Source: Paraphysomonas bandaiensis (lineage: Eukaryota; Protista; Chrysophyceae). Taken from it: 64,000 nt of DNA. Of the stretch, positions 1,227-54,051 are shown one piece after another (position 1 is the stretch's first letter; every line of letters starts with the position of its first letter). Location: the NCBI GenBank assembly GCA_965644295.1, contig CBFFRP010000127.1, positions 62,001-126,000 of the forward strand, in the 5' to 3' direction. The notes beneath the pieces are model-generated. The model was not told where the DNA came from. It worked only from the letters and a program-made list of their open reading frames with translations, and ran no database searches. The position numbers were made by a program, and so were the translations under genes.

Positions 1227-2252
1227 ATGCTAACTGACTCGCCGCTCTCGCCTAGCTGTCAATCACCAAGAAGGAACTGCGTGTATCCGTGTTCCCAGTC
1301 ATCTGATTCATTTGAATCTGAATTTGGTGCTGTTGTCACTGATAGTAACAAAGACAAATACGTCACTAAACTAGAATCATTTGATGATATCTCTGAAAAC
1401 TCTGAAGCAGTTCCGACTGCTACTGTAAAAGCAACAGACCCTAATGCTGAAATGGTTGCTCTGCTGCAACAAATGAAGATTTTGATACAAACCAGTATTG
1501 ACAATATGAATCCTGCCGATTCAGCGCGTGTTGACACAAAAGGGACTACTCCGGTTCGTGATCAGCCCGACGTGGCGCCAAGATGTTCATCTTTGCTATA
1601 TCGACTCCGAAATAGCACAATCTGGTCATATTGGTGGTGTGGTCAGGATATTGACAGCGTAGAAGTCGACAAGCTGATTCATATTTTCTTACTGGTAGGA
1701 TCACTGACCTTTATGATTTATTGTTGATTTTTCTTTCATTGACACATTCCTTACTCATTTTCTAACACACAAAACGTTATGTAAATGCAGGTAAATGTCA
1801 TCGTTATTATCGTACCATTTGAGTCCATTTTCAATTACAACTTTGAATTCTGGAGCGAAGTGGATGATTTGAGTCAAAATTGCGACAGAGAAGACAGATC
1901 ACGATATGTGGATGTCATGTCAGATATTCGTCGCGACTTTCTTACCATAATGGTTGGCTCTGTGCTGGCAACATCTATTTGTGTGATATACTTCATTCTC
2001 CGTCCAATAAAAAGAAAAGGCGACGAGTTTGTTCAATGGTGGATTCGTGGCGGCCGATACCCTATCTTTGTTTGCGCTGTGTGCACGCTTCTATCTCTTG
2101 ATACACTTGTGCGGTTTATGGCTCACATATTTCGAAACTACATGTTGCGCCCCGAAGACTTTTGCGATCAGCCTAATGGTGTGCACACTCGCTTAGGATA
2201 TGGCGTCTTTATATTTACACTTCTGCTATCTGCAGTCTTCATGACCATATAG
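1227..2252 (+). CDS. Hypothetical membrane protein (disordered N-terminus, about 4 TM segments), 2 exons
   Basis: ORFs 1227-1727 and 1785-2252 join in phase 0 through a GT-AG intron 1695-1790 (...IFLL|VNVIVIIVPF...). Hydrophobic segments lie in the C-terminal half. Confidence 0.65.
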
Positions 2253-2631
2253 AAATATTAAATCATATGGTTGATGGCAAGTGATATATCATATGTCATA
2301 TTATTTTTCATTTGTAATATGACAGCAGGTAATAAAATTTGATAATTTGGTTCAGTCTATGTATATAGTAATCAGTGCAAGTAATAGTACTGCAAAATCA
2401 AGAATTGCACGATAGTATAACAATTCGTCGTTGCCTACATTCATTCGATTAAGTCTATATATGTATGCAGTATTTAGTTAATGTAGCAATACTGCTAATC
2501 AAGTATTTTACAATAGCACTACAAGTCGTCCTGTCCCAATTCTGGCGACCTTGAGCATCCATTTTATATTATTACCAATTTCTACTATATTATTGAAATA
2601 TTTTGCTCAAATCGCAGTCATGACTCGTAGT

Positions 2632-3122
2632 GAATGTCTTATTAATAACAATAATACAATAATATGCGTGTAAGAGTGCTTAATTCTTAACCCTGATATC
2701 CTACTATTAAACACTTTGAAAGCTGCTTGTGCGTCCTACCAAGCACCAAGGTGCAGCCACTTTCGCTCTGACACTCAAATCGAACGCAGTTAGCGAGCAG
2801 AATGTTAATTAATCTACCTGACATTGTCTGACTTCAGGACTCTTGAGTCCTCAAAGTATACAGCCCGGAGGCTTGAATTCAGCAGGCAGCCCAATACCCC
2901 GAATGTGCTTGAGGTGGGTCTGTGTATTTGTCAAGGCCGAAAGAGGTCTACACAGGTGAATCTTAGTTGTGTCCTTTGTACCACACAAGCATTTGGCTAT
3001 GAGTGGGAAGAATGTTATCTGTCTACTATATATAATGGCTCACATTAGTTTCCCGGAAATATTTCTCCGGGACTTATCCTCCAGAACATCACGCAAAGGT
3101 GCGAGCTCAACTTCGTTGAGGG
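2632..3122 (-). mobile_element. RIME/SIDER-like short retroposon, copy 1 (near full length, tail type A)
   Basis: Aligns by eye with the copies at 5941, 20698, 28344, 41116, 52712 and 53531 (core GCTGCTTGTGCGTC..CAAGCACCAAGGTGC, and GCAGGCAGCCCAATAC). Shares the 3' end ...AATAAGACATTC and the 5' start CCCTCAACGAAG. Confidence 0.85.
3037..3122 (-). ncRNA. HDV-like ribozyme-like motif (Ingi Pr77-type) at the retroposon 5' end
   Basis: Order on the minus strand: CCCTCAAC..P2 GCTCGC, P3 ACC, L3 TTTGCGT, GAT, P1' GTTCTGG, TAAGT, P4 CCCGGAGA-AATA-TTTCCGGG, J4/2 AAACTAA, P2' GTGAGC. P1 and P3 are imperfect. Confidence 0.6.
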
Positions 3123-3778
3123 GCCGTTATAACTTAACTTTCCGATACTAAGGTATCCTAATATACCTGTTTGCTTCAACAATGATAATATGAGCGTATT
3201 TGCAATGTTCAGTCATGAACAATATACCATTACCACCTATTATTGTTCATTATTGAACTGGAAGGATACACATCCATATCTTGTCCTCATGTCCTAATAT
3301 CTTGGATATATTTTGGATGCATATTTTGGATATTTGCATATGTGCATTTTGCTTGTGGAGCAGATGATGAAGAAACTCTAAGCTAAACCAATCTAGAAAA
3401 CGATGTTTTTGAGGTGACTTGATTTCGAAAAGTGGCGATATCTAGATAATCCAGTACGACAGGAATACTGTATTATGCTGATACAGTGGTGTATATGTCA
3501 GAAAGTTCGTAGAAGTGCGTAGGCTAATTCTCACTGTATGCTATATACTGCAGTGCAGTGGTGTGAATACAGGCAGTCTCTATAGATATGAAGAAGAGAG
3601 AAGTAACTTTCGTCATGATTCTGCGATATATCTTGGAGGGTTCCTGTGGGAAGATACGGCATACAGCATACATCACAATACGAATACATCCATCTGATCT
3701 CATCGACACTCATATACATACACACACATATACAACTCATCTCAGTCACTTTACTCTATAAGCAACCAAACAACAGTC

Positions 3779-5733
3779 ATGGGTAACACACAACCTAGTA
3801 ACTCTTCTCAGTCCTGTGGGATTTGTACGACCTCTACAGCTAATACGACATGTATAACTCTAGCGTGCTGTGGTGCTATCTATCACCAGAAGTGTCTCAA
3901 GGCTCTCGTATCATCTGGAGCTACAAACTGCCCTTCCTGTGCTTCTCCTCTTCCATCTGATAGTGGTATTAGTATACCAGCCCCTCCTGCTCCTGCTCCA
4001 GCTCTACGACCTCCACCAGTCCCAACAACCCCGATAGTGTCCATAGCATCCATGCCTGAGGAACCTGTAGAACGATGGGTTCCACCACCTACAGATGAAG
4101 CTATTGCAGCACTCTCAAATGCGACTATTGTAATTGAAGCAATTCCTGAGCTGTGAGTAACTTTGCGTGTAAGAAATTGGTTTAATCTATCTCGTGTAGA
4201 CCTCAAGCCTCCCTCGATATGCAAAATAATTTTCATACTGTGGTAAGTCTTACCACAGAAGAGTCATCTACAGGAGCTTGTAATATGAATGAGACTTCCG
4301 CGGCTTCTCACTCTAGACCTCCTATGGATGTAATATGTGTCCTTGACACGAGCGGTTCTATGAGTTCATGCAATAAACTTGTAAATCTGAAACATGCCGG
4401 TACTTCATGTCATTCGTATATGTTTTTTTCTAATCTCATATACTCTTGATCTTTTAGTGGACTATGTGCGCAGCGAGTTGACAGATAAAGATCGAATGGC
4501 GGTGATCAACTTTGAAAATTCCGCGACCCTTGTCCATGACCTGTTACTGATGAACGATAGTAACAAGCAAACCACGACTGCTGTATGTTCCCAATTGCGA
4601 CCCGGGGGTGGTACAAGCATTGTGTCGGGTCTAGACGCAGCATACAACATGATATCCACAAGGGCCACAAGCAACCCTATTACCAGTGTGTTTCTTTTAA
4701 CGGACGGAATTGACTCCTCTCACATGGCCAGAAAGAAGGTAAATGAATGTCGCACATATTGGGATAAATTGCTTATTTTGTGAAAAGACCGTCTCTCGTC
4801 GTATTAAGGAGGCCGGGTGCTCGCTCTTTGTCTTCGGATTTGGCAATGACCATGACAGTGCTCACCTTCAGGTATATTGCTCTGCTTCCTCTGACTTTGA
4901 CAGAGCCACTTAATTTCACTCTTCAGGCGATCGCAGATGCTGGTGACGGCACTTTTACCTATATAGAACAGTCTGACATGGTAGTTGACGCTTTCGGAGG
5001 TGCCCTTGGAGCTGAACAGAGTATATTTGCTACCGAGGTGTGTCTACGTATTCAGACTATGGGAGGAACAACAATCACTACAGCAGAGACTGGTAGTTAT
5101 AGACACAATATAAGTTCAGATCGGCATAGCATGGATATATATCTGAGCAGAATGATGATTGGGGAAGAGCGCGACATGCTATTGACCCTGAGTATACCAG
5201 CCTGTGAATCCCCAGTGGAAAGATTCCCTATATTATGCACAAGTGCATCTTATATTTCAGTGGGTACTACTGAGACGAAAAGAGTGAGTGGCTCTGAATG
5301 CCACATTAGTAGGGTACACAAAAACGATCTTAACGCCAACGCTGTTCGTGACGAAAGGGTTGAAGTACAGTGTAATCGAATGGTTCTTCTGCGCGCGACA
5401 CGGGGATCATTGGAGGCAGCCGACAGAAATGACTATTCGGAAGCACGAAGGACTGTGGAAGAAGCACTGCGTACAGTGAAATCTTCACATTCTACTCAAG
5501 CAGGAAACCCTAAGTGTGCTGCTTTTGTTGCTGAACTAAACTCCACTCTCGAAAGTGTCTCGAATCGTGAAATATACACAACCCGCGGCGGGCGACATAA
5601 TCTAGCGGAGCAAACTCAGACCTTTTCGAAACAGAAACTGTGTTATGCAAAGGCTGGAAGGGCAAATTTGTACCAAAGCAAAGTTTCTGCGTCTAAACAG
5701 TCTGAGGCATCTGCATCAAAGAGAAAGTACTAA
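3779..5733 (+). CDS. RING finger + vWA (+Vwaint-like) domain protein, WAV3/EDA40-like E3 ligase architecture
   Basis: CGIC..CCGAIYHQKC..CPSC RING, proline-rich linker, vWA motifs DVICVLDTSGSM, GGGT and VFLLTDG. Four short introns join the ORFs at 3779, 4219, 4394 and 4780. Confidence 0.85.
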
Positions 5734-5940
5734 TTAAGATTTTGAAAAATTGTGTTCAAAGAGTATTTTAATTTAGGAGTCATATCTTATATCGAAAAGT
5801 TGTAATAAGTCGGTGCTTTTACCTTTCTTCTCTAGTATACAACTTTATTCCCACAATTATTTTCCCATTCTTTCATTCAACTTACTTCAAGTCTTCAAGT
5901 GTACTACTCTTAATTCTGAATGCTATAGAGTAGAAGTAAA

Positions 5941-6449
5941 TATGATATTATTAGCAATAATAGGCGTGTAAGAGTCAGAAGTAATGTAGCAAAACAATAT
6001 CAACTAACTTGTGGTTAACTCTAATATCCTAATATTTAAGAACGCTACAAAAGCTGCTTGTGCGTCCTACCAAGCACCAAGGTGCAGCCACTTTCGCTCT
6101 GACACTCAAATCAAACGCAGTGAACAAGCAGAATGTTAATTAATCTACCTGACATGTGCTGACTTTAGGATTCTTGAGTCCTTAAGGTGAACAGCCAGGA
6201 TGCTTGAATTCACAGCAGGCAGCCCAATACGCGGATGCCCTTGTGGTGTGGGCCCATTTCCGGCTGCCTGTTTATTTGTCAAGGCCCAAAGATATCTGCA
6301 CAAGTGAATGTCATTAGTGTCCCTCGTACCACCAAGTAGTAGGCTATGCGTAGGAAAAACAATATCTGCTTACTATATAAATGTGGCTCACATAAATTCC
6401 CCGGAGAAATAACTCCGGTACTTAGGCCCTTGGCACCACAAAAAGGAGC
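5941..6449 (-). mobile_element. RIME/SIDER-like short retroposon, copy 2 (tail type A)
   Basis: Nearly identical to copy 1 over 6051-6150. The 5' part reads GTGGTGCCAAGGGCCTAAGTACCGGAG-TTATTT-CTCCGGGGAATTTATGTGAGCC on the minus strand. Confidence 0.85.
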
Positions 6450-6499
6450 AATATATAGCAATTCTCTTGATAGATAGAGTTTTAACAATGTAAATGTTA

Positions 6500-7038: not shown

Positions 7039-9519
7039 CTACATGCAAAAACACTGGCTCTGTTTAATTGGTATAGTTGAAGGAGGATCGACAAAAGGGT
7101 TACTATTTCGTAACGATTTCTGCTGCTGGTTGTTGGGGGTGTCCGGCATTATCTCCACATCTCTGTCTTGATTCACATCATCTTCAACAGATGCCTCTTT
7201 GATAGACTTAGTTGATGGTACTCGGCTGTTCTCCGGCTTACAAATTTCTGGGGACTGGGACACAGTAGTGCGAAGTTCAGATATAGTTGAGCGGGTATTA
7301 TACGACACATCTCGAAGGGTGAGTGCATTGCTGCTTGGAGAATCTGTTGATCGTTCTTCTTCTTCATCATCTGTTGTGTGACCGCTCACTGTATCTAGTA
7401 CAGTCAATGTCAGCGCATTGCAAGTCACAACATTATCACAGGAATTTCTGGTCTCTGGAGAAGCGCCACACACTTTATCCTCAACATCATCAGGCTCTAC
7501 TGAAGTTAATATTTGGGCCTCATCGCGAGTACATACAGTCTGAGTTACATCGCCTTCCACTCCAGCTTCAGGCGTATTCAGGATATCGTTCTCGTCTCCA
7601 GTGACATCTATCACATTCTTGCTCTGATCATCATTTGGTGCGCTATTGCCTGTTTCACACAAGTCAACATTTGTATGTTCTCCATTTTGTACAATATCCA
7701 CTGTTTCCGCTTCAACTTTGCCGGACAGACCTCCTATCACATTCTTGTCCTGGTCATTATCTGGTGCACTCTTACCAGTTTCACACAAGTCAACATTTGC
7801 TTGTTCTCCATTTTGTAGAGCATCGACAGTTTCCGCTTCAACTTTTCCGGAAAGAACTTCACAGACACCCACAGAATCACAATCGTTTCCTAAGCTTTTA
7901 ACTACGGGACGGCTATGTGTAGAACCCGATATTGGGGAGACATCACTGTTTGCGCCAGCATAAGATGATGTGACAGATTCATCTCGGTCGGAATTAAGAA
8001 AAGAATCAGATGAGGTGACGACTTGTTCAGGTTTAACCGGGGATGGGCATTCAGGTGCAGTAGCGAGAGACCATTTACTAGTCTCCCCATCTGACACTTT
8101 GCGGTAGAAACTGCCCTGTCTTGTTTTTGTCAAAGGGGACAAATCTGGGACAGAGTTATGTTTGGTGAAAGATGCACGCCGCTCAGCGACTAGACTTCTC
8201 CTCGGTGATTCCACAGTTGTATGTGCTTTCTCATCACTGCACTTGTCACTTTGGCTAGCTGATGGGGCAGATATCCATGAGTTGTCCGGGCTGTGAAGCT
8301 TATTTGGAGAAGTTGCGCTGGCTGAGCGACTTATTGGTATTATGCGTGGCGGGGCCCTGAAGTCTGTATACGTCGTTGTGCCATTACTACGAATATGAGG
8401 TTTTACATTGTTGCTACTATTATCACTGGAAATTTCGGATTGGGTTGCATCAACCACCTCCGTTTCTACTTTTAAGTCACTGCCGTTAACGCCACTTGAA
8501 ATTCTGTCCGAAGTCCATCGTTCAAACAGCAATTTAAAAACTATTGGCTCTTGAGTGCCATGAATGTGATGAACATTTTTCCCAGAGTTGTGGTATGTTT
8601 TGGAGACGGCGTCTAAAGCTTCTTCTGTCAGTAACACAGCATCTGGCGCCTTGCCAGTCCATACATAAACAACATATCCACACTCCACAATGTAAACCCC
8701 TTTATCAGATAATACACTGGGAGGAAGACGATTACATCGCCCGGAAGAGTCTACATTAAATTTTACCACAGTATCCAGAGTCGAAGAAGGATTATTAGAA
8801 TAGCGGAATACCTCCACCGGACTGTTGGGGACAGGCTCGTTAGTATCTACACACGGCTCAACTTCAGTGGTGGCAGATAATTTATCATCACCCGCCAACA
8901 GCTTCCACAACACCTTCTCATTTATGCCCATGTCGCCAGGTGGTTCAGTTTGGCGAATGAGGACTGGGGGACGAGAACATTTGAGATCCATCCCTGACAT
9001 TACCGGTGCAGCACCCGTTACAATATTTCCATCTTCCTGGTCACAGAGTTTGCCTATCCACATATATAACTGACGCTCCTTGGGGTTATGGATTAAATAT
9101 GCACAATGGATATTTAATTTGTCACCACTAGAGTGCGGAATGTACTGGAGAGACTTCTTGAAGCATCGGTATAGCTGTAATGAACCGCCGACAGTTTTAC
9201 GTATCGAGTTATCACTATGTGTTCCATAAACGGCTTTCTCTTTAGCGATGACCGGTACTGGTATCCGAGAGAGTGAGCGCCCCCCTCCCTCTCTGTCTCC
9301 ACTCCAGTCCCTTCCTCTCTCCCTACATGAAGACGCTCGTCGAAGAGTCATCTGCTGTCCGCGCTGAGATCTGATATGATCCTCTATATAAGGAGCCAAG
9401 TACTCGTCCAATCGTCCCTCTTCTTCAGCGGTCTGCAGGCCCATTGAGTCTGTTTTACGTAACTTGCTTTTCACCACCACCGCCGCCCGCTTCCTCTCAA
9501 ATTCAGAGAACTGATTCAT
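7039..9519 (-). CDS. Gelsolin/villin-repeat protein with long disordered tail and C-terminal CaaX (CFCM)
   Basis: 826-aa ORF with two gelsolin-like segments (LNIHCAYLIH..QLYMWIGK; VYIVECGYVVYVWTGK..EPIVFKLLFERW). Ends in CFCM-stop. Confidence 0.75.
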   Translation of the reverse strand: MNQFSEFERKRAAVVVKSKLRKTDSMGLQTAEEEGRLDEYLAPYIEDHIRSQRGQQMTLRRASSCRERGRDWSGDREGGGRSLSRIPVPVIAKEKAVYGTHSDNSIRKTVGGSLQLYRCFKKSLQYIPHSSGDKLNIHCAYLIHNPKERQLYMWIGKLCDQEDGNIVTGAAPVMSGMDLKCSRPPVLIRQTEPPGDMGINEKVLWKLLAGDDKLSATTEVEPCVDTNEPVPNSPVEVFRYSNNPSSTLDTVVKFNVDSSGRCNRLPPSVLSDKGVYIVECGYVVYVWTGKAPDAVLLTEEALDAVSKTYHNSGKNVHHIHGTQEPIVFKLLFERWTSDRISSGVNGSDLKVETEVVDATQSEISSDNSSNNVKPHIRSNGTTTYTDFRAPPRIIPISRSASATSPNKLHSPDNSWISAPSASQSDKCSDEKAHTTVESPRRSLVAERRASFTKHNSVPDLSPLTKTRQGSFYRKVSDGETSKWSLATAPECPSPVKPEQVVTSSDSFLNSDRDESVTSSYAGANSDVSPISGSTHSRPVVKSLGNDCDSVGVCEVLSGKVEAETVDALQNGEQANVDLCETGKSAPDNDQDKNVIGGLSGKVEAETVDIVQNGEHTNVDLCETGNSAPNDDQSKNVIDVTGDENDILNTPEAGVEGDVTQTVCTRDEAQILTSVEPDDVEDKVCGASPETRNSCDNVVTCNALTLTVLDTVSGHTTDDEEEERSTDSPSSNALTLRDVSYNTRSTISELRTTVSQSPEICKPENSRVPSTKSIKEASVEDDVNQDRDVEIMPDTPNNQQQKSLRNSNPFVDPPSTIPIKQSQCFCM
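7611..7851 (-). repeat. Intragenic tandem duplication, period 126 bp (42 aa)
   Basis: LSGKVEAETVD..QNGE..NVDLCETG.SAP..DQ.KNVI occurs twice. Confidence 0.9.
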
Positions 9520-20697: not shown

Positions 20698-21174
20698 TAC
20701 CCTCTACGAAGTCGGACTTTTTCGTGGTGTTCTGGGTGATAAGTACCGGAGAGATTCTCGCCGGGAAATTAAAGTGAGCCGCAAGCATATAGTCAGCAGA
20801 TAATTTTCTGCCTACCCATATAGCCGAATGCTTGTGTAGACGTCTTTGGGCCCCCATGAATAAACAGGCATCCGGGAATGGGCCCACCTCAAGGGCATCC
20901 GGGACAGGGCCCACCTAAAGGGTAACCGGGGTATTGGGCTGCCTGCTGAAGTCAAGCATCCGGGATGTTCACCTTAAGCCTTAAGGACAGAGAGCGAAAG
21001 TGATAGCACCTTGTTGGTGCTTGCGACGACGCACAAGCAGCTTTCGTACCATTAAATAGTAGGATAATTGAAACCGATTAGTTTCAGGTAGAGGTCTAAC
21101 TAGGTTGACTAGTATTCATCTAGCTACTAAGGTGGTGCAGGTTTTTAACGCCTATTGCTAATAATAAGACTTTC
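20698..21174 (+). mobile_element. RIME/SIDER-like short retroposon, copy 3 (full length, 477 bp, tail type B)
   Basis: Perfect 14-bp direct repeat AATATAAAATAAAA at 20684-20697 and 21175-21188. Starts (TA)CCCTCTACGAAG and ends TAATAATAAGACTTTC. Confidence 0.92.
20700..20780 (+). ncRNA. HDV-like ribozyme-like motif, probably inactive copy
   Basis: ACT-TTTTCGT-GGT (P3/L3), GTTCTGGG, TAAGTA, P4 CCGG-AGAG-ATT-CTC-G-CCGG, J4/2 GAAATTAA (T at the position of the catalytic C), GTGAGCC. The 5' strand of P2 is partly deleted. Confidence 0.5.
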
Positions 21175-21526
21175 AATATAAAATAAAACATATATTATAC
21201 TGATAAGTAGAGGCGCCTATGAATGCTTGAAAAGTAGTGATATATTCGACTGTTTTTGGAGTACGGTTGGAAGTGAATGCAATGCAACATCTGTGGACGC
21301 AAGAAAAAGGCTCAGTAAAGCAACAGAAAGCATCGATAGCAGAGGTGTAGATGTAACCTCCCAAATTTCGTCACACCGACAAATGTTTTTCGGCTACACT
21401 ATTTTTGATTATATTCCCTTAAGAGTGTGCAACATAGGTACACGTCCTACCTTTCCTATATAGGTCTATACTAATTCTTCCTTTTAATTTACTAGATGCT
21501 CACTTGTTCAAACTTATTGAAGTGAG

Positions 21527-28343: not shown

Positions 28344-28613
28344 GAAAGTCTTATTATTAGCAATAGGCGTTAAAAACCTGCACCAACTTTTAGTAGCTAG
28401 ATGAATGCTAGACAAACTAGTTAGACCTCTACCTGTAACTAATCAGTACACACTTTTTTTATCCTACTATATTTAGCGCTACGAAAGATGCTTGTGCGTC
28501 GTCGCAAGCACCAAGGTGCGACCACTTTCGCTCTGAGTTCTTATAAGGTGAACATCCCGGATGTTTGACTTCAGCAGGCAGCCCAATACCCCGGTTACCC
28601 TTCAGGTGGGCCC
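28344..28613 (-). mobile_element. RIME/SIDER-like retroposon, copy 4 (5'-truncated, tail type B)
   Basis: Colinear with the reverse complement of about 20906-21174. Confidence 0.88.
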
Positions 28614-41115: not shown

Positions 41116-41644
41116 GAATGTCTCATTATTAGCAATAGGCGTGTAATAGTCAGAACTAATATATATCAAACAATTTAACTAACTTGTGATTAACTCTGAT
41201 ATCCTAATATTTTTAGCGCTACGAAAACTTCTTGTGCCTCACCGCAAGCACCAAGGTACAGTAAGCAAGCAGAATGTTGATATACCTGACACCTGACATC
41301 TGCTGACTTCAAGATTCTTGAGTCATAAAAGGTGAACAGCCCGGATGCTTACTTCAAGGGAAGGGGTCTTTTGCCCACAGCTGAGGCACCATCAAAGTGG
41401 GGGTATTTATGGGTTTTGTGGTGATAGTTGGAGGTGTTGACCTGGGGTGGGGTTGGGTATAGGTCACAGACCGTCTTGTCACTCCTAGAAGTCGGAGGAC
41501 TGGCGGCTGTCTCTGCTTACTACTACGCGTTCTGGGAGGGAGTCTGTGTGTAGCCCTCGAGGAAGCAGCGTAGCGTTGACTGCGATCTTAAAGCACATCT
41601 GTTTGACCGCTGCAAATAGTGGTTGAAGTATACTCACCACAGGG
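41116..41644 (-). mobile_element. Retroposon copy 6: family 3' half (41116-41356) joined to about 290 bp of unrelated C/A-rich sequence
   Basis: Type A tail and core with an internal deletion. Possible decayed TSD ATAGTAA..ACTC at 41101 and 41645. The 5' boundary is uncertain. Confidence 0.7.
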
Positions 41645-52711: not shown

Positions 52712-52983
52712 AAAAGACTAATATTAGCAAAAGGCGTCTAAGAGTCAGACCTAGTTTAGCGTTGCCAACTTGTACTTAACACTAATATCTACTATTTAAC
52801 ACTACGGAAACTGCTTGTGCGTCACCGCAAGTACGAGGGTGCAACCACTTACCCTCTATCACTTAAAGCAAAGGCAGTGACCAAGCAGAGTCTTTTTATA
52901 CCTGACATCTGCTGACTTTAGAATTTTTGAGTCCTCAAGGTGAACAGTCCGGATGCTTGACTTCTGCAGGCAGCCCAATACCC
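52712..52983 (-). mobile_element. RIME/SIDER-like retroposon, copy 7 (5'-truncated, tail type A)
   Basis: ATTAGCAAAAGGCGTCTAAGAGTCAGA..CTGCTTGTGCGTCACCGCAAG..GCAGGCAGCCCAATACCC. Confidence 0.85.
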
Positions 52984-53530: not shown

Positions 53531-54051
53531 ACATATGAACCCCACCAATCATACGCATATGACCATAGCACCGGACAGTATGAAACCACCAGGCCCTAGA
53601 CAGCGGCGACGCCGTCTCCGGCAACTCCACCTATGCCTGACGCCCAGACGGTGCACGGCGACACCGCCACATTCCACCACATCATCAACCTCTCAGCACA
53701 CACATCTAGCGCTTGGTACACTCAGAACCTTAATACAGAACCCTGTACCTCAGAGCCTGGCGGAACCTTATCCAAAGGGGAGACCCCCGGACAACTCGCG
53801 CTGAGTTCCAAGACACACAAGCAGGGCGAAACTCACAAACAACATTAAGAACGGAAGTGGTTGCACCTTGGTGCTTGCGGCGATGCACAAGCAGCTTCTG
53901 TAGCGCTAAATAGTAGGATAATAGAATTTGTGCGGATTATTTATGGGTAGAGGTCTAACTAGTAGATCTAGCATACCACTAGCCATTCGATCGGGACGAG
54001 TTTTTAACGCCTATTGCTAAATAAAAAGACTTTCAATAAAGACTTTCAATA
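53531..54051 (+). mobile_element. Retroposon copy 8: about 320 bp unrelated sequence + family 3' 200 bp, inside one TSD
   Basis: Perfect 13-bp direct repeat AAAGGCAAATGAT at 53518-53530 and 54052-54064. The terminal 13-mer AAAGACTTTCAAT is duplicated. Confidence 0.88.

Follow-up and report, generated by a model that had tools for sequence, protein, structure and literature searches.

A block of about 89 nucleotides on the minus strand of the 64-kb window (positions 3034-3122) is probably the mutated 5' head of a high-copy, non-autonomous non-LTR retroposon of about 0.5 kb that carries an HDV-like ribozyme at its head. The window is the whole stretch of DNA that was analysed, C127:62001-126000 of a 62.5-Mb assembly, and the 86 bases flagged in it by a first-pass annotation are a decayed copy of the repeat head. 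A complete element would consist of a head of ~89 nt folding into the nested double pseudoknot of HDV-like ribozymes, a body, and a tail of ~190 nt that corresponds to the 3' UTR of a LINE.

Copies and fragments of the repeat were located by a self-BLAST of the 64-kb window. Copy 1 (2627..3122, minus strand) has head, body and LINE-derived tail and ends in ...AATAAGACATTCACTAC. It is old, with about 75% identity to other copies, and its flanks show no recognisable target-site duplication (TSD). Its head (3034..3122, minus strand, element nt 1-89) is a decayed HDV-like ribozyme module with 86% identity to the family head consensus; read in minus-strand order from 3122 to 3034, it is CCCTCAACGAAGTTGAGCTCGCACC-TTTGCGT-GAT-GTTCTGGAGG-ATAAGT-[CCCGGAG..CCGGG]-AAACTAA-TGTGAGCC, with mutations in L3 (TTTGCGT) and P3 (GAT). 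Copy 2 (5935..6473, minus strand) is full length and flanked by a 7-bp TSD (ACTCTAT), and its head is strongly mutated, most heavily across the first ~45 nt. Copy 3 (20700..21178, plus strand) belongs to a subfamily with a P4 variant and a type-2 tail; it has a TSD of ~10 bp (TAAAATAAAA) and internal deletions, the 5' strand of P3 being among the losses. The window further contains a 5'-truncated fragment with body and tail (52775..52983, minus strand), two fragments with parts of body and tail (28460..28610 and 41190..41350, both minus strand) and a tail fragment (53848..53920, plus strand).

The first-pass annotation had described a homologous block at the start of copies 1, 2 and 3, and this is what we find: the starts lie at 3122 and near 6473 (both minus strand) and at 20700 (plus strand). 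The order of parts that it gave (P1/P2/ACC/L3/GGT/P1'/TAAGTA/P4/J4-2/GTGAGCC) also matches. All three heads are decayed, and none of the three passes even the core of the HDV descriptor described below. Two caveats of the earlier description hold for single copies but not for the family. The catalytic C is indeed lost in copies 2 and 3, but the family consensus retains it as C75; the hairpin CTCAAC-GAA-GTTGAG, which was said to compete with P1, is present in copy 1 but is private to that copy and missing from the consensus.

Searching the 62.5-Mb genome with a 36-mer of the head and allowing up to three mismatches gave 905 matches (reversed control: 0), far more than chance would give, which puts the copy number at about 900 genome-wide; a typical copy measures ~480-550 nt. 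Copies start sharply at CCCTCAAC, with upstream DNA that is unrelated, and end in ...TTGCTAATAATAAGAC(A/T)TTCA(C/A)TA without a poly(A) tail. TSDs of 7-13 bp flank them. A long variant of 1186 nt (1.19 kb), which has an 11-bp TSD, shares its first ~354 nt with the standard element; copies of this variant at different loci are 98-99% identical. Across the first 124 nt, identity reaches 100% among at least 22 copies. One young 1.19-kb insertion (L031:207-1406, on G000:C399) is polymorphic between runs: X1 and X7 contigs join its flanks precisely, with a 9-bp overlap, and thus represent the empty-site allele. Near-identical copies, TSDs and an empty-site allele together mean that the retroposon was recently active.

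No ORF of note is found in the element, and whole elements show no likeness to tRNA, 5S or 7SL RNA (Rfam at E<=1; ARAGORN). The family thus lacks the tRNA-, 7SL- or 5S-derived head with a pol III promoter that defines a canonical SINE. It does have the features of a LINE-mobilised retroposon, namely TSDs, a defined 5' end, an empty-site allele and a 3' tail like that of a resident LINE. The earlier proposal of a non-autonomous, LINE-dependent retroposon headed by the block is therefore well founded, on the strength of the TSDs, the LINE-derived tail and the empty-site allele.

To assess the fold of the head, the published RNArobo descriptor for HDV-like ribozymes (PMC4870747 supplement Figs S11-S14) was implemented and applied to the family consensus. 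P3 pairs A23-C25 with G33-U35 (ACC/GGU, 3 bp) as the descriptor demands, and the loop L3, UUUUCGU, fits TYYHCG*Y. J1/4 is AUAAGUA, in agreement with the RN rule. P4 pairs C53-A59 with U64-G70 (CCGGAGA-UAUU-UCUCCGG) and has the hairpin form required. J4/2 reads GAAAC75UAA(C), followed by GUGAGCC, and C75-U-A-A fits CNRA. P2 pairs G15-C22 with G80-C86 (GG(A)CUCGC/GUGAGCC, 7 bp, A17 bulged); the rule that it have 6-7 bp and abut P3 and J4/2 is satisfied only by the insertion-tolerant version of the descriptor. P1 fails: its 3' strand, between P3 and J1/4, has 10 nt (GUUCUGGGGG) where 5-7 are allowed. The structural check that the first-pass annotation had called for thus comes out in favour of P2, P3, L3, J1/4, J4/2 and P4, but against P1.

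The best P1 pairs C1-A6 with U40-G45, or forms 8 bp with C39/U40 bulged. Relaxed options are 6 bp plus four linker nucleotides, 8 bp interrupted by a 2-nt bulge, or the 7 bp of the canonical register with two central mismatches. The 6-bp helix from C1 (-8.7 kcal/mol) starts precisely at the 5' boundary of the element, which agrees with cleavage 5' of P1. P1.1 of the consensus would be weak, at best A-U or G-U. As modelled, the head consensus contains an HDV-like ribozyme core and could be catalytic; in silico, the claim of such a core at the head is borne out for the family consensus.

We consider it very improbable that the HDV fold is a coincidence in what is really an ordinary SINE head or promoter. 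The core of the descriptor does occur by chance, about 1.35 times per Mb in shuffled window sequence, and Rfam gives no match; its HDV-like models, which describe narrow subfamilies and ignore pseudoknots, hit neither the window at the gathering score nor the head or whole element at E<=10, and no meaningful match to a different Rfam family emerged. But all 27 core matches in 487 kb of examined DNA are heads of the SINE-like family. Among 400,000 dinucleotide shuffles of the head there were 50 core passes and 9 full passes with the relaxed P1 models, which were added post hoc after the sequence had been seen (unlike the core test), and a single one had a P1 starting at the terminus. Similarity of the head to tRNA, 5S or 7SL RNA, as expected of an ordinary SINE head, was not seen.

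In favour of the fold, P1, P3 and P4 (-20 kcal/mol) together with P2 (~-7.5 kcal/mol) roughly match the minimum free energy of the nested structure (-26 to -27 kcal/mol). The nested fold is no more stable than that of shuffled sequences (z = -0.9), a score that is uninformative because the HDV fold is a pseudoknot. Two large subfamilies differ solely in the distal part of P4 and both stay paired, the variant CCGGAGAG-AUU-CUCUCUGG being found in 347 copies. The earlier statement that P4 pairing is kept while its interior differs can therefore be extended from the window copies to whole subfamilies. One further copy (G000:C376:79963-80015) has the P4 CUAAAGA/UCUUUGG, again with pairing retained. 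Covariation within the family was considered as evidence for a ribozyme and rejected, since the differences between copies are neutral decay, much of it at CpG. Head conservation among copies is no higher than that of the body and is flat along the element. Heads in L011, L013, L017, L018 and others show many CpG to TpG/CpA differences, for example in the CCGG of P4, a pattern which suggests cytosine methylation of these repeats.

The RNA runs, which consist of assembled contigs, were also consulted. One RNA-library contig spans the upstream junction of the element, which counts against the ribozyme reading. Contig breaks at the element edge were considered as possible RNA ends and dismissed as assembly effects.

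The letters common to the head and the active ribozyme of L1Tco were combined into a search pattern, ACCTNNNCGTGGTG..AGTAC..GAANCTAA, which matched 70 metagenome contigs; L065, a human-skin metagenome contig with one motif match, was left out of all analyses. A perfect 7-bp P1 lies at the expected place in 40 of the 54 unique sequences, compared with 1 and 5 in two controls. This P1 occurs in 19 distinct versions with strong covariation, and the core motif therefore marks genuine HDV-like ribozymes. The SINE head shares 23 specified core bases with these covarying ribozymes, which further argues against a fold that arose by chance. Nearly all of the metagenomic relatives have a clean 7-bp P1, whereas the SINE head has three extra nucleotides.

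A rival reading is that the head is a relic, a sequence of HDV-like descent that was inactivated by the three extra P1 nucleotides and is retained because it serves as a promoter or binds proteins; initiation at an internal promoter would then set the element's 5' end. The head fails the strict descriptor at P1, whereas 35/54 of the unique metagenomic sequences pass it. It also contains CGTG at +30 to +33, resembling the downstream promoter element that Pr77 is reported to have at +25 to +28 (PMC4748587). Several trypanosomatid SIDER ribozymes proved inactive in vitro despite adequate folds (PMC4035085). We nevertheless rate a relic as rather unlikely. Old and young subfamilies alike have a consensus with the full core (L3, P3, catalytic C, P2 and P4) intact, which would be unexpected for a ribozyme long dead, and the best P1 helix has its 5' end right at the boundary of the element.

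The metagenomic matches occur in diverse surroundings. On phage-like contigs (L087:649-713, L117:6065-6129 and L128) the motif directly follows tRNA-Glu. These three fit the published theta ribozymes of gut phages, which are minimal, HDV-like and linked to tRNAs (PMC10879173). The core letters of these ribozymes are nearly identical to those of the SINE head, as in L087 (ACCUUUACGUGGUG...AUAAGUACC...GGGAAACUAA); they differ from it in their role in 3' processing of phage tRNAs, in a canonical 7-bp P1 and in a short P4. Contigs of this type also carry tRNA arrays and a TnpB-like ORF. Canonical HDV-like motifs were further found on AT-rich contigs (L062:4858, L068:5935, L097:966 and L103, minus strand, near 7418-7466) that are rich in tRNA genes and encode a subunit of NADH dehydrogenase. 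These contigs look like organelle (mitochondrial) genomes; their ribozymes have a P1 of CAATATC or CGATATC paired with GATATTG. Finally, an APE-RT LINE on L106 (ORF 1482-5924), with an RT only 23% identical to that of the local LINE, has a canonical ribozyme with the same core at its 5' end (L106:164-236). Directly ahead of the L106 ribozyme, the P1-P2 segment is partly repeated in tandem. The presence of the motif in tRNA-linked phage, mitochondrion-like and unrelated-LINE ribozymes indicates that the letters shared with Pr77 are general features of HDV-like ribozymes and do not single out Pr77, as far as sequence comparison can tell.

An HDV-like ribozyme at the 5' end of L1Tc, ingi, NARTc, RIME and SIDER elements is the hallmark known as L1TcRz/Pr77 (PMC3185411, PMC4035085). 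The Pr77 sequence quoted in the first-pass annotation agrees with published primers (PMC3185411) and element sequences (PMC4035085 supplement). It had also classified the block as Ingi/Pr77-type. Likenesses do exist. In both systems the first ~80 nt of the retroposons, non-autonomous ones included, form an HDV-like ribozyme that begins with CCCU; P3 is ACC/GGU, L3 has 7 nt and ends in CGU, J1/4 ends in AGUA and J4/2 is GAARCUAA. TSDs are of ~10-12 bp, and nucleotide 1 is C in the active L1Tc ribozyme as in the SINE head consensus. Two points favour a true homologue of Pr77, acting as ribozyme and promoter within an ingi-clade pair of LINE and RIME-like element. The common CCCU start is followed by CACCU...CGUGGUG, AGUAC and GGAA.CUAA in the same order, and a global alignment of the head with the active L1Tco ribozyme has 53 identities in 79 nt (z = 2.4), a modest similarity whose score is reached by 42 of 2000 shuffles. 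We still judge such homology improbable. The motifs ACC-U...CGU-GGUG, AGUAC and GAARCUAA recur in L087, L117 and L128, on the mitochondrion-like contigs and in the L106 LINE with its distant RT; since they are generic, the similarity to L1Tco does not establish a specific relationship to Pr77, and the type assignment is not supported. The 3' strand of P1 also differs, with 10 nt here and 7 in Pr77. Common descent of the head and Pr77 is, on this sequence comparison, unproven.

The LINE that shares the tail points in the same direction. It encodes APE and RT domains within a 1722-aa frame. Full-length copies have an extra N-terminal region of ~1400 aa with a SET domain. The resulting polyprotein is very long, with a SET/PR methyltransferase domain before APE and RT (L052:843-4998, plus strand; L051:1426-6591, minus strand; L053-L058), and SET+APE+RT relatives of it are present in ENA and JGI assemblies. 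Over its final ~190 nt, the repeat is colinear with the ~180-nt 3' UTR of this LINE. Within this stretch, the block GGTTGCACC(A/T)TGGTGCT.GC.GCGA.GCACAAGCAG is near-identical in repeat and LINE, and the terminal motif TAATAAT.AGAC.TTCA is common to both. At its 5' end, the LINE has 2.5 to ~10 tandem 162-bp monomers with a constant start phase, an array reminiscent of the promoter monomers of mouse L1. The ribozyme head is absent from this 5' end, and a motif search among the LINE families inspected gave no second family with the head.

A LINE sharing both ends with the repeat had been sought; the tail is indeed common to the repeat and the SET-APE-RT LINE, but the head is missing from the latter. 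A shared tail with an unshared head makes the pair SINE-like and not RIME/ingi-like. The earlier label "RIME/SIDER-like" fits poorly for this reason, given that the Pr77 signature is common to LINEs and their derivatives. Placement in the Ingi clade is not favoured either: with Pfam, RNase H is not detected in the C-terminal 720 aa of the LINE, which counts against a Pr77 homologue as well. Among named relatives, those nearest to its RT come from a mollusc and a fungus (APE-RT-RNase H elements, 24-27% identity); most matches are unnamed and none bears a trypanosomatid name. Genome scans with Pfam PF14529 and PF00075 did not pick up the partner LINE.

Some observations concern the neighbourhood of retroelements in this genome. 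Two LINE copies are directly preceded by part of the SINE tail in inverted orientation (L053:1336-1500, and L051, reverse complement 1004-1081), which could be a coincidence or could reflect an insertion preference for the tail sequence. On L050 (G000:C169:176600-186599, minus strand), a SINE 5' fragment of ~280 nt is part of a unit of 1041 bp, which occurs as a tandem duplication directly ahead of a Ty3/gypsy ORF (RT-RNase H-integrase); a third head lies downstream. The RT adjoining the heads on contig C169 was considered and rejected, as it proved to belong to a Ty3/gypsy element; the heads close to it are nested fragments with no relation to it.

The host is not a kinetoplastid, in line with the first-pass annotation. 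A housekeeping protein encoded in the window has its nearest named relatives in ochrophyte stramenopiles (38-42% identity) and is 100% identical to an MMETSP/EukProt transcript. Ty3/gypsy elements are present in the genome, and the retroposon is found in poly(A) marine metatranscriptome assemblies, for which DNA carry-over is a possible source. A PF00504 scan of the genome gave no light-harvesting genes, and the idea of a diatom host was discarded on this ground. No kinetoplastid-named sequence was returned by any of the homology searches made, a set that did not include a direct search for kinetoplastid markers. Host and partner thus add to the differences from Pr77 systems, with a non-kinetoplastid genome and a SET-APE-RT LINE in which RNase H was not detected.

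Among other known systems, R2, RTE-type and further LINEs carry 5'-terminal HDV-like ribozymes that release the element RNA from co-transcripts (PMC6765202). The R2 ribozyme and R2 SIDEs resemble the present family in having such a ribozyme at the 5' end and in the reliance of non-autonomous elements on LINE proteins. However, SIDEs are internal deletions that retain both ends of the LINE, whereas here a ribozyme head is joined to the tail of a LINE with a different 5' end, the 162-bp monomers. In contrast to R2, the family is not specific for a site in rDNA. The family also resembles the SINEs of stringent-type SINE/LINE pairs: both are non-coding, ~0.5 kb long, flanked by TSDs and present in high copy number, with a tail homologous to the LINE 3' UTR and no poly(A). 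The difference is that the head is ribozyme-like and not derived from tRNA, 7SL or 5S RNA.

For the preferred reading, a retroposon with an HDV-like ribozyme head, we propose the following life cycle. The element would be transcribed within longer transcripts or from its own start. The head would then cleave just 5' of C1, giving an RNA whose 5' end is exactly CCCUCAAC. The RT of the LINE may recognise the structured, poly(A)-less tail, which is homologous in the two elements, and target-primed reverse transcription would insert the copy, leaving the 7-13 bp duplications that flank it. Catalysis is the weakest step of this scheme because of the three extra nucleotides in P1. A more specific version, which we put forward tentatively and hold to be possible but short of probable, is that of a "ribozyme SINE" in which an HDV-like ribozyme takes the place of the pol III head, was captured independently of the LINE, is active, and sets the 5' end by cutting the element out of read-through transcripts.

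It is well established that non-LTR retrotransposons can carry an HDV-like ribozyme at the 5' end, and one more example is not surprising per se. This family is nevertheless a clear case, in a marine protist distant from trypanosomatids and animals, and with recent activity. One short core motif links ribozymes that are LINE-borne, tRNA-linked in phages or organelle-like, which calls for caution when it is used as a lineage marker in the manner of Pr77. The architecture of the element is chimeric, in that a ribozyme head is combined with a tail borrowed from a LINE whose own 5' end has tandem monomers; definition of the 5' end is thereby separated from recognition by the partner. The P1 variant is natural and, by copy number, successful, and would probe how strict the junction between P3 and P1 is in HDV-like ribozymes. 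If the "ribozyme SINE" is true, activity in spite of three extra nucleotides between P3 and P1 would widen the known tolerance of the HDV fold.
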